NCBI GenBank assembly: GCA_029953675.1
Contig: JAMWBK010000010.1
Location: forward strand, 372,001 to 436,000
DNA: 64,000 nt
Source of the DNA: Rhodosorus marinus CCMP1338
Taxonomy: Eukaryota; Plantae; Rhodophyta
Reading direction: 5' to 3'
Shown: piece by piece, positions 43,619 to 63,241 of the stretch
Position numbering within the stretch: the first letter of the stretch is position 1
How the letters are laid out: each line of letters opens with the position of its first letter
Notes under the pieces: model-generated
Told to the model about the DNA's origin: nothing
The model's input: the letters and a program-made list of their open reading frames with translations, nothing else
Databases searched by the model: none
Position numbers and translations under genes: made by a program

Positions 43619-46509
43619 ATGGATGGTGAGACACAGAGTATGGTTTCCAACCGTGCGTTGGAGGTTCCTATGAATTCTGACCTTGTCATGTCGAATCAGA
43701 TGAGGACTGATGACCTTGAACCTGAAACGTTTGACACAACGGGAACTATGGGATTCTACTCTAGTAGAGTGATCCCGAGGAAGCAGTACACCAAGTTGGA
43801 AACAATTTCGGGCCAGGGCGTTCGATCGATGATGTACGCTCACAATGTGATGCTGCTGCTGGGGGTCATCTATTGTTTAATCATCGTGATCCTGGGCGTA
43901 ACAGCTTGGGTCGTGCCTGAGGATGAACTCAATTTGGGTGTCCTTGATTATTCATACGTCAAGTACCCGGAGGGTTACGAGATCTTTTCTGGGGTTCTGA
44001 TGATTCTGGTGTTCACGTACATGTTCATCTTGACGGTATTCTACTGGAAGCGAATTATTACTCAGTGGTGGAGGAAGAAGGACGTAACGCTGGAAATGGT
44101 CTGGGTCATGGCCCTGACGCTCGGGCTCACGGTATATACTAATCCATTCAATGCAATCGTTGTCATTGAGGAAGCATTGGAAGTTCTCGACCCACAGGAG
44201 ATCACGCCCGAGCAAGAGTTAATCATGTCCACAGTCGAATCTGTGGCGTTTTCAGTTGTGACAACTTGGTACATCTGGACTACGGCACACTCCTACAGAT
44301 ACCTGGATCGAAAACCTGGAATCCTGTTTTATATTCCAAAGATTCTGGTTGTTGCTCTTGGTTTAGTCATCCGAATTCTCGCGTATCAGGATGATGTTTA
44401 CTTAAGTAAGCCCAGCTTGACCATGTGAAGTGCTCTTGTTGCTGCTGGAAGAACCTTTGTGCTACTGGCACGGCCTTTCCTGTTTCGTTCGGTCTCTGAG
44501 CAGTGTGTTTCTTGTTTTGCTCGCTTTGTTCACAGACGAACTGGCTTTGATTAGCATTTTCCGGTACTGCACGTTTATACCGCAAGACCCCAGGATAACG
44601 CAGGATTCGGCTCCCCTATGTTGGGCGCTTTGGCTGATGTTCGTGGAGTTGGTGGGCGTCCTCTGGACGCTTTTCGATGTTTTCTGGACCAGACACTGCC
44701 TGAAAAAAGTTGACTACATGAGATTCCGATCGAAACAGATCGGCTTCCGTTTCTTCGTCTACTTCAACGCAACCTTCTACATCTTTTATTGGATCACGAT
44801 GCTGGTAGTCATTACCGTCACCGTCGACAAGAGAACACTTTTCTTCGCGTTGGCGGGGGGTTGGTGGTTTAGGTTTTCAGGGAGGATCTATCCGTTCGGA
44901 ATGCTGCTCATGTTGAGTTCTTACACTTACGTTACTGCAACCGTTAACCTCCCAGCGCATTTCCACGCGAGGCTCTTCTTCTTCGGGTGCAAACCTTGCG
45001 TGAGAGGGTCACTAGAGCGAGAAGAAGGATTGGTGGACGAAATCGAGCCAATTACGTATCGGAGTACTGAGCCCCAATCATTCGCGGGGAGGAGGATGGA
45101 CCTCCCCACTAGTTGCTTTACTATGCAGACTCACGTATGTTCCGGTCTCAGATCGTCCTATCTTTGTGCAACTCGAAGGCTTGATTTCTAACCTTAAGGA
45201 CGACGTCGACTTTTCTGATTCAATTCACAGGTCCTTATGTTCAATTTCGCGTGGCTTGTGTACTACTACGGCACAGAGAAGTTTAACAACCTTGCTATAA
45301 AGCAGGTGAGCGCGCAGCTAGAGCAGTCTATGAAGTTCTCGCCGTGTTGACGTCAACTACAGCCATCTAGTTATGCGAACGAATCTCGAGTTTTGCGTAC
45401 TAACAGTCAGAGCACTGTTTCTTTGTGTTTCACAGGACGTTTTCAAGTTCGAAGTTGCAGATCACGTTGTCGCCAGGGCTACTGATACGCATGCGCTAGT
45501 TATTGACGGGGAGGATCGAATCGTGATTGCTTTTCGGGGCACGGCATCCGGGAAAAACGTATGGACTGATCTGAAAATTACGCAGAGGCCCCTTAGGGAG
45601 GTCATACCTTCTATTGGAGTCGCTCAAGTCAGTACGGACCTTTTAGCCTCCTCGGCTTGGCGCAAGGCAAATGTGCACTCTGGTTTCGCCTCAGCGTATA
45701 GTGCTGTCGCTGAACGGGTGCTGGAGAAGGTCAAGGAGCTCTATGATGCCAACCCGCGACCTGTTTACTTCACGGGACACTCTCTTGGTGGATGTTTAGC
45801 CACCTTATGTTCCTTGGACTGTTACGTGTCTCTTGGCATTAGCAGCAGAGATATTTTTGTATCTTCGTTCGGGTCGCCGAGGCTCGGAAATAAGTCGTTC
45901 AGAGAAGTCTACGACAACAGTATAGCGAGCTGCTGGAGGATCATTGTGGGACCGGATATGGTGGCGAAGCTTCCACGATGGGGATACAAGCACTGCGGAA
46001 AGAAGGTGCTTCTGACGACTGATGGTGATTTGTTCCTAGATCCCACGGCATTGGAGCTTAAGCTGTGGAGTGGTGAGAAACCTGGGATGCTCTTCCATAG
46101 AAAGGCGAGCTACCTACTTGCTATGAGGACGTGGTGCGATATCAACCACGGGGAGGAATATGTTCCAGAGTTCTGGGCTTGGCCATTCAGTCCGAATGAC
46201 AGTAGAAGGTATTGTAGTGAGTGCAAAGCTGAACACGCCGATGCGAAAGACTGACAGTGACTTTTTGCATTGGACAGGTTCTCGCACGCTGTGAATACTG
46301 CTTCGTCCTCTGCTAGCGCTGCGTACGCGTTTAGGCGCTCGGAGCAGAAACAGAATCGTGGAACGCGGCTGTTCCAACGTGATGTTATGATCTCTCAGCT
46401 GAATTCGGGAGAGCGATCTAGCAAACAGCTTTGGGCGAGTTTGTCTAGGCGTGTCCTCGCCGAAGATAGACGTTCTCTTGTCGATATTGACAAGATGACT
46501 GATTTGTAG
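43619..46509 (+). CDS. Multi-pass membrane protein (TMEM181/Wntless-like) fused to a class 3 lipase, multi-exon
   Basis: Lipase: IVIAFRGT, VHSGF, YFTGHSLGG (GxSxG), FGSPRLGN, DMVAKLP. N-terminal half has several TM segments including EMVWV..YTNPF, W..H..R..FYIPK and DYMRFRSK. Confidence 0.85.
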
Positions 46510-61969: not shown

Positions 61970-62692
61970 ATGGCGTTACGGAAGGGGAGCGTTGCCCCTT
62001 CCTTTCAACTGCCTGACGCGGATGGAAAGGTGTGGTCCCTGGATGAGCTCGTTGAGCAAAACTCCGTACACCTGATCTTCCTTCGTCATCTGGTGAGCAG
62101 TCTCGAGAAGCGTTTTTAGTTGTTTCGCTTGTGTTTTTAGGACTGTCATGCCCTGTTTTCGGGAATTTTGACGTTTTAGTTTCTTCGCCTATTTCTTGAA
62201 CAGAGCTGACTGCCATGACAGCGGCATGTCCTTCGGATCTGGGAGCACAGGGAGCACTACGAAAAGGTGAATTTGAGGCCAATCTTGGTCTCCTTCGTGG
62301 CATCGGGGAGAATTGGCTCGTACTTGGAGAGCATAAGCATTCGTTCAGACGCTTTCTTGATACTAATAGACAGGGCTCGAACTGTCTATGCTTCGTATGG
62401 GATGGGAAGCTCGTTGGGCGGTTCTTGGTCCCCGCTCACGCTTGGCTGGTATGGTAGAGAGATTTTGCGCGGAAGGCTCCCTCAAAGGATCCAAGAAGAT
62501 CCAAACCAGCTTGGAGGAGACTTTGTAATCAACCACCACGACAGGATAATGCTGCTTCACCACCCAAGCAGGACTCCCATCGATCGGCCGAGCGTTCACG
62601 ACGTGCTCCTGTCAGTTGACCCACATCTTGATCTTGCAGGTCATGAATTAGGCGGATCAAGTGAAGATCCACCGGATGCATGTGCCTTGTAG
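61970..62692 (+). CDS. SELENOL: Selenoprotein L-like AhpC/TSA (PRXL2-related) protein with UxxU motif, 2 exons, 203 aa
   Basis: Exon 1 61970-62092 (GSVAPSFQLPDADGKVWSLDEL..HLIFLRHL); intron 62093-62203; exon 2 begins AGC TGA CTG CCA TGA CAG CGG CAT (S-U-L-P-U-Q-R-H) and runs open to PNQLGGDFVI..H.S..P.DRPSV..LL and TAG at 62692. Confidence 0.88.
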
Positions 62693-62755: not shown

Positions 62756-62823
62756 GAAGGTTTCATATGACGACACCGCACATGAAACCCAAGCGGGACA
62801 GCGGAAGTCTGATCAAATCGTTC
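62756..62823 (+). ncRNA. Eukaryotic type II SECIS-like element in the 3' UTR
   Basis: Helix I gaaggttt/aaatc(g)ttc; core AUGAC (62767-71) opposite UGAU (62810-13); helix II gac/guc, ccgc/gcgg, ug/ca; AAA at 62785-87; mini-stem CCC-AAGC-GGG. Confidence 0.72.
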
Positions 62824-63241
62824 TATCATCGAAGCAGAATAGCACCAAAACTAACGAGATCCAAACAATGAAAGAAAGCAAGTTTCTCGTCATAATGCAT
62901 CCTGTCCACACTCTCAAACACCAAGCCATGTACACCTGCTCAGCGAACCCCGAAAGATGGAACATTGGTCATATTGAGCCACATTGGCCCGAACGAGCTA
63001 GGGCCAAATGAGCCAATGTTCCAGTTTTTATTTTTTTTGTACCATTGGCCATGTGAAGATGTCCACCTTGGCCCCAATTATTCTAAGAACATTGGCCTAA
63101 GGTACTACCCAGTTTGGCCCGGGCCAGGGGACGGATGTTTCATGGTGGAAGGTGTCTGCTAAGGACCTGACGGAGAAGGACGGGGCGTATTTTGTATAAA
63201 GGAATTTACTATTTTTGGTCATGATTTGACGATTAAATAGG

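Follow-up and report, generated by a model that had tools for sequence, protein, structure and literature searches.

According to a passage in PMC3316567 (citing Shchedrina et al., 2007), one SECIS serves both selenocysteine (Sec) codons of fish selenoprotein L (SelL). Outside the Bangiophyceae-Florideophyceae clade, some red algae are reported to possess a complete Sec machinery (PMC6627142), and the smallest algal selenoproteomes are said to be those of red algae (PMC7539508). The window (the whole stretch of DNA analysed here, 64,000 nt) carried on its forward strand a gene with two in-frame TGAs, followed by a hairpin at 62756-62823. This hairpin is highly likely to be the form II SECIS of the SelL 3'UTR, and is predicted from its sequence to serve both UGAs. 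An earlier note on this DNA had arrived at the same form II reading, which was strengthened here by the conservation of both TGAs (six homologues), by equivalent 3'UTR elements and by the first rank of the hairpin among the matches of a covariance model (R3, see below). The coordinates of all features are specified in Table 1.

Table 1. Features of the SelL gene, of the SECIS-like hairpin and of homologous loci (positions are those of the named sequence).
Feature	Sequence	Position	Strand	Basis or remark
SelL exon 1 (MALRKGSVAPSFQLPDADGKVWSLDELVEQNSVHLIFLRHL)	window	61970..62092	+	translation; ends ...FLRHL at GT donor
Intron GT..AG, 111 nt, one codon before the first Sec codon	window	62093..62203	+	sequence; junction matches homologues
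SelL exon 2, starts S-*-L-P-*-QRHV; TAG stop 62690-62692 included	window	62204..62692	+	translation
First in-frame TGA, Sec 1 of U-L-P-U	window	62207..62209	+	aligns with first Cys of CLPC (P0006); TGA in L001-L004, L086, L087
Second in-frame TGA, Sec 2 of U-L-P-U	window	62216..62218	+	aligned as first TGA: CLPC in P0006, TGA in six homologues
Whole SECIS-like element, form II	window	62756..62823	+	constrained folds; top R3 match 62757-62822
Helix I, 5' strand, GAAGGUUU	window	62756..62763	+	pair list of constrained fold
Helix I, 3' strand, AAAUC-G-UUC (62815-62819 and 62821-62823 paired, G62820 bulged)	window	62815..62823	+	pair list
AUGA, 5' half of non-Watson-Crick quartet in SECIS core	window	62767..62770	+	sequence; AUGA column invariant in orthologue elements (alignment A6)
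GA, 3' half of quartet in SECIS core	window	62811..62812	+	sequence; alignment A6
Helix II, 5' strand: GAC, A, CCGC, ACA bulge, UG	window	62772..62784	+	constrained folds
Helix II, 3' strand: CA, GCGG, AA, GUC	window	62799..62809	+	constrained folds
Unpaired AAA (AAR motif), 13 nt after AUGAN	window	62785..62787	+	constrained folds
Apical mini-stem CCC/GGG (62788-90 with 62795-97), AAGC loop; form II feature	window	62788..62797	+	folds
Competing perfect 8-bp inverted repeat, GGUUUCAU (62759-66) with AUGAAACC (62782-89); as DNA GGTTTCAT/ATGAAACC	window	62759..62789	+	-7.3 kcal/mol alone; part of -16.8 kcal/mol MFE
Extra 3'-strand nt of helix II (1x2 loop)	window	62805-62806		
Extra 3'-strand nt of helix II	L002	~2337-2338		
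Extra 3'-strand nt of helix II	L003	~807		
Extra 3'-strand nt of helix II	L004	~1162		
Extra 3'-strand nt of helix II	L086	~1460		
Extra 3'-strand nt of helix II	L087	~2088		
Extra 3'-strand nt of helix II	L089	~3610		
Sec motif RHLEULPU	L001			DNA
Sec motif RHLEUYPU	L002 (Porphyridium purpureum)			DNA
Sec motif RHMDULPU	L003			DNA
Sec motif RHLEUYPU	L004			DNA
Sec motif RHLGULPU	L086			DNA
Sec motif RHLGULPU	L087			DNA
SECIS_1 match, 21.8 bits (gathering 35)	L003			exactly on descriptor element
SECIS_1 match, 15.3 bits (gathering 35)	L004			exactly on descriptor element
SECIS_1 match, 21.5 bits (gathering 35)	L089 (Sphaeroforma)			exactly on descriptor element

Judged from its sequence, the upstream gene is a two-exon selenoprotein L with the AhpC/TSA (thioredoxin-like) fold and a UxxU motif. 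The name SelL, already used in the earlier note, was backed by a Pfam AhpC-TSA match at 8.5e-09 (spliced protein, with Cys in place of Sec) and by the profile search, whose matches included proteins named 'selenoprotein L' (fish) and 'SelL-related redox protein' (bacterial). An exhaustive protein search returned 360 relatives at E<=1e-3; a word-indexed search with the spliced protein gave one match only, and the exhaustive and profile searches were needed. The nearest named SelL relatives were those of Purpureofilum and Porphyridium, and the closest protein relatives (P0003 and P0184, from MMETSP; presumably Rhodosorus marinus) were 84-86% identical to the window SelL. The species is presumed from another protein of the window, the dihydroxy-acid dehydratase (ILVD), whose identity to the Rhodosorus marinus enzyme is 96% and which marks the DNA as that of a Rhodosorus-like red alga. 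Reading through from exon 1 into the intron led to a stop. The spliced junction RHL|S-U-L-P-U-QRHV was equivalent to the uninterrupted RHLEULPU, RHMDULPU and RHLGULPU of homologues, and the Cys homologue P0006 read FHRHLGCLPCRDH where the window equivalent is FLRHLSULPUQRH.

Most algal SelL homologues carried a Cys 2-3 residues from the C terminus (CAL, CNS, CSE, CKS, CTA; in the window C-A-L, 62681-62689). For the UxxU centre, this near-C-terminal Cys might serve as a resolving or relay thiol.

Both in-frame TGAs were kept in all six homologues that were read as DNA, with conserved flanking sequence on both sides, and some of these homologues were transcript-like contigs without introns. Global reassignment of UGA was ruled out: all six homologous SelL ORFs terminate in TGA, and long ORFs of the window often do so as well. 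UGA is consequently both stop and Sec codon in one mRNA, and a SECIS is therefore required.

The anatomy described in the earlier note (quartet, 8-bp helix I, irregular helix II, AAA, CCC/GGG mini-stem and 63-nt offset) was found to be correct base for base, the element starting 63 nt past the TAG stop. Helix I had 8 bp with one bulged G, and was set off from the core by the loops CAU (5') and UC (3'). The quartet pairs of the core were U.U, G.A, A.G and C.U. In its lower part, helix II consisted of GAC/GUC (62772-74 with 62807-09), followed by a 1x2 loop (A62775 versus AA62805-06); in its upper part, CCGC/GCGG (62776-79 with 62801-04) was followed by the 3-nt bulge ACA (62780-82) and by UG/CA (62783-84 with 62799-800). 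The helix thus totalled 9 bp, broken by the 1x2 loop and the 3-nt bulge. AAA followed by CC was common to five of the six sequences of alignment A6. SECISearch patterns place the unpaired AA(R) ~10-13 nt above AUGAN, and the 13 nt of the window are the upper limit of this range. The form II features present in the window element were the AUGA/GA quartet, helix I, helix II with AA(R) at 10-13 nt, and the mini-stem.

A SECIS descriptor was defined that called for AUGA followed, 10-13 nt beyond AUGAN, by an unpaired AA, and for a GA in the 3' strand. Helix I had to have 5 bp or more and helix II 7 bp or more, with the constrained energy at or below -10 kcal/mol. For descriptor folding, the first helix II pair was forced and the core was held unpaired. 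On the two strands of the window (128 kb together), 12 sites were obtained, 62767 among them, and stricter values that the candidate satisfies reduced these to 3 sites. The 11 further sites count in favour of a chance hairpin, that is, of AUGA, AAA and GA falling together in a foldable context, with the true SECIS, if any, located elsewhere or built on a non-canonical core. However, the same rate leads to an expectation of only ~0.024 matches in the ~260 nt of plausible 3'UTR (from the stop to the CCAAT cluster of the next gene), and the examination of AUGAs by constrained folding gave no other credible SECIS candidate between the SelL stop and the gene that follows. Two conserved Sec codons in a gene also call for a SECIS somewhere.

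Three alternative cores (AUGA 62782, 62699 and 63008) were ruled out, the AA not being correctly placed or helix II being poor. The other 11 sites matched by the loose descriptor include window 46387 (+), 7090 (+), 31473 (-) and 15605 (-), the first located 133 nt past the lipase-like ORF 45373-46254. The orthologue-derived covariance model recovered none of the 11 in the window.

Four CATTGG motifs (inverted CCAAT) were located at window 62963-63095, a region that also contains 3 of the 6 ATTGGCC of the window. The cluster is situated 150-280 nt upstream of ATG 63242, where the next gene of the + strand begins (ubiquitin-like and BAG-like regions). It is probably the promoter of this gene, and would bound the SelL 3'UTR. 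Comparable TGATTGG repeats were seen after the SelL gene in L001 (1030-1190).

When the descriptor was applied to seven homologous loci (36.8 kb, both strands), exactly one match was obtained in each, and in six of the seven this was the SelL 3'UTR element, on the strand of the gene. The distance from the stop to AUGA was 75 nt in the window, compared with 112 nt in L001, 75 nt in L002, 98 nt in L003, 79 nt in L004, 83 nt in L086 and 99 nt in L087. A similar element at a similar distance in six homologous 3'UTRs, with no further descriptor match in these loci, argues against a chance hairpin. The AAA spacing was 13 nt in the window versus 11-12 nt in the homologues. The L001 locus was ambiguous: R3 placed the candidate picked by eye first in this locus (853-930, 10.1 bits), but this match was weak with a poor helix II, and the descriptor preferred 1160, which is 400 nt past the stop. 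A SECIS-like element was also present in the ichthyosporean Sphaeroforma arctica (L089), a locus at which the Sec codons were not read.

Rfam searches of 401 nt and of 101 nt returned no match of the model SECIS_1 (RF00031) to the window element, whether at the gathering score or at E<=10, and snoRNA/miRNA noise was all that appeared. The earlier note had considered a poor score in standard models possible, and this was borne out, even at E<=10 on the 101-nt sequence. The missing Rfam match would agree with a chance hairpin. It is nevertheless weak counter-evidence, because homologous elements also fail or score below gathering: the Porphyridium orthologue element (L002) was not matched by SECIS_1, and three other elements were matched below the gathering score (Table 1). 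That score is an annotation criterion for RF00031 and no biological definition. The outcome that the earlier note would have held against the hairpin, no covariance-model hit even at relaxed thresholds, is literally what SECIS_1 returned, but it does not discriminate, since the Porphyridium orthologue fails too.

MAFFT by itself did not bring the 3' halves of the elements into correct alignment, and iterated covariance models were used instead: R1 was based on a two-sequence seed (L004, L086), R2 on four orthologue elements and R3 on five, none of them including the window sequence. R1 recovered L003 and L002 and missed the window element, a two-sequence model being too specific. With filters off, R2 gave two matches only at E<=10 in the whole window, one of which was 62757-62822 (11.2 bits). 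R3 ranked 62757-62822 first in the window (128 kb, both strands) with 13.6 bits, and aligned it end to end (AUGA, helix II, AAA, CCC/GGG mini-stem, GA). The E value of 0.82, not significant alone over 128 kb, is what a chance hairpin might give, but the top rank in the window speaks against one. For the ~260-nt 3'UTR the R3 score corresponds to ~0.002, a figure whose weight depends on taking the 3'UTR as the a-priori search space.

In the six-sequence R3 alignment, 86% of the pair cells were standard (versus 54% after shuffling, and 33-51% after sliding the partners) and both sides changed in 14 of the 15 pairs; the window row formed 7/9 consensus helix II pairs and 3/3 mini-stem pairs. These pairing figures are upper bounds, since the alignment had been adjusted to the structure by the model. 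Even so, the helices are kept although the sequences differ almost completely, and helix II and the mini-stem thereby gain support of the covariation type. The stability of the fold was ordinary (z = -0.85 versus shuffles), and a chance hairpin would be no different in this respect. With the evidence from the 3'UTR and from the homologous loci set against these points, a chance origin of the hairpin is considered improbable.

A second rival concerns the fold itself. When the bare 68 nt were folded without constraint, the MFE structure was a two-hairpin fold of -16.8 kcal/mol, compared with -10.8 kcal/mol for the SECIS fold. Its first hairpin is the stem GGUUUCAU/AUGAAACC, which shares nucleotides with helix I, with the AUGA core and with the AAA motif, would sequester the core, and has a second ATGA within it at 62782; the same 8-bp stem was also seen in spurious Rfam alignments. 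Together with the second stem, it might have a role other than that of a SECIS, for example as a 3'-end or stability element, or no function. In a 91-nt context, by contrast, the MFE structure was SECIS-like. Nearest-neighbour energies take no account of the G.A quartet or of protein binding. In the alignment, moreover, the 8-bp stem had no counterpart in the orthologue elements, while the SECIS pairs were conserved. The two-hairpin fold is accordingly a very improbable account of the element, and the form II SECIS is retained as the preferred reading.

Hardly credible, finally, is a pseudogene or mis-modelled gene in which the TGAs are true stops or intronic and the hairpin has nothing to decode: the Porphyridium annotation (P0004) does skip the U-x-x-U segment by an intron, but frame and sequence are conserved around both TGAs in seven sequences, including intronless transcript-like contigs, the Cys homologue carries CLPC at exactly these positions, and the exon 1/exon 2 junction restores the conserved RHL-x-U spacing.

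For Porphyridium purpureum SelL (L002 1501-2220; VRMN01000001, KAA8499869.1), the deposited model drops ...VLCFLRHLE-U-Y-P-U-QVHVKE by an artificial intron. Because this intron removes the U-x-x-U segment, the protein stands in the annotation as a hypothetical protein without the redox motif. Upstream of SelL in the same locus (1241-1328, +), a sub-threshold match to the C/D-box snoRNA family Afu_190 was observed; it scored 24.3 bits (E 0.14) and included 17 nt of perfect identity.

Several other observations were made on the homologous loci. A gene of the Ctr copper transporter family (L086 115-594, L087 628-804) immediately precedes SelL in each of two unrelated contigs, and this neighbourhood is a conserved gene order in one eukaryotic lineage. 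L085 was dropped as a homologue (bacterial look, with an adjoining ferredoxin gene). In one metagenome scan, 80 loci with ~30-47% identity were obtained. Most of them came from samples of sediment, soil or sludge; all were judged bacterial by sample type and were left out of the SECIS comparison. Many bacterial-type homologues (P0007, P0012, P0013 and others; loci L005-L084) are ~130 aa long and start right past the UxxU position. They are possibly ORFs cut at Sec codons, and the complete proteins would then be bacterial Sec-containing SelL-like proteins.

Seven SelL elements could be folded: those of the window, Porphyridium, three uncultured algal contigs/transcripts, one Logan contig and Sphaeroforma. 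One detail of these elements may be new: in all seven, 2-3 bp above the quartet, helix II carried an unpaired nucleotide in excess on its 3' strand (positions in Table 1), and in the Rfam SECIS_1 alignments (L003, L004, L089) this extra nucleotide stood out as inserted against the consensus. That SelL mRNAs carry their own SECIS subtype, marked by this nucleotide, is an unlikely proposition. Should the extra nucleotide prove specific to SelL and not general among algal SECIS elements, it might be an adaptation to the decoding of two UGAs, only two codons apart, by a single SECIS. The shared 3'-strand bulge is a modest lead, open to testing, to the way in which two adjacent UGAs are served by one SECIS. 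The 'lineage-specific variant' proposed in the earlier note holds weakly: the window element alone has the 3-nt bulge and the AAA at 13 nt, but its 1x2 loop also occurs in Porphyridium. The special demand seen there, that the element must serve two UGAs, was overstated, as one SECIS for both codons is the known situation in fish SelL according to the passage in PMC3316567.

The proposed mechanism is as follows. The gene (exons 61970-62092 and 62204-62692) would encode a protein of the AhpC/TSA fold with the redox motif U-L-P-U, each U being specified by an in-frame UGA. In the 3'UTR, the hairpin would present a kink-turn-like core, with AUGA opposite GA and tandem sheared G.A pairs; the unpaired AAA, about one helical turn above the core and capped by the mini-stem, would complete the form II layout. 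As in other eukaryotes, SBP2 would bind the core and recruit eEFSec with Sec-tRNA(Sec), and the ribosome would read UGA 62207-09 and UGA 62216-18 as selenocysteine, without stopping. A single SECIS would act on both codons, as in fish SelL, and the product would have a UxxU, diselenide-capable redox centre. We infer that the element is present in the mRNA, that it is bound by protein and that recoding actually takes place.

On this reading, the protein encoded in the window is a true selenoprotein, and its gene will be broken up by automatic annotation, as the already mis-modelled Porphyridium orthologue illustrates. A UxxU selenoprotein L would be placed in red algae outside the Bangiophyceae-Florideophyceae (Rhodosorus-like, Porphyridium). 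The locus also supplies a concrete SECIS candidate missed by Rfam, useful for retraining detectors on non-metazoan sequences.

Among known systems, the form II SECIS (RF00031) has in common with the window element helix I, the internal loop, the AUGA/GA quartet, a helix II of about one turn, the AAA and the mini-stem, as well as a site, here in the predicted 3'UTR, shortly past the stop of a gene with in-frame UGA. In contrast to it, the window helix II has a 1x2 loop after the third base pair and a 3-nt bulge on the 5' side, the AAA is placed at the upper limit (13 nt), and E<=10 was not reached with the Rfam model. Fish SelL belongs to the same protein family and has the same UxxU motif, with a single SECIS for two Sec codons two residues apart, as far as the passage cited above describes it. 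The fish proteins among the matches have ~300 aa, whereas the window protein is single-domain with ~200 aa. The comparison with fish was made at the protein level, since neither Rfam nor the descriptor located a SelL SECIS in the 2.5 kb that follow the gene of Symphorus nematophorus (L088).

The Porphyridium purpureum element (L002, AUGA 2295, GA 2342), which is unannotated, shares with the window element AUGA-C, the 3-bp lower helix II and the 1x2 loop, then an upper helix II of 4-5 bp, AAACC and the mini-stem, with AUGA 75 nt past the stop in both. As the third pair of the lower helix II, the window element has C-G where Porphyridium has G-C. The Porphyridium element differs in having the AAA at 11 nt, no 3-nt bulge, a mini-stem of 4 bp with a 7-nt loop, and a 5' internal loop of 9 nt (3 nt in the window). 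The window element is very probably one more instance of a familiar device and no novel device in itself, and it leaves the known mechanism unchanged.
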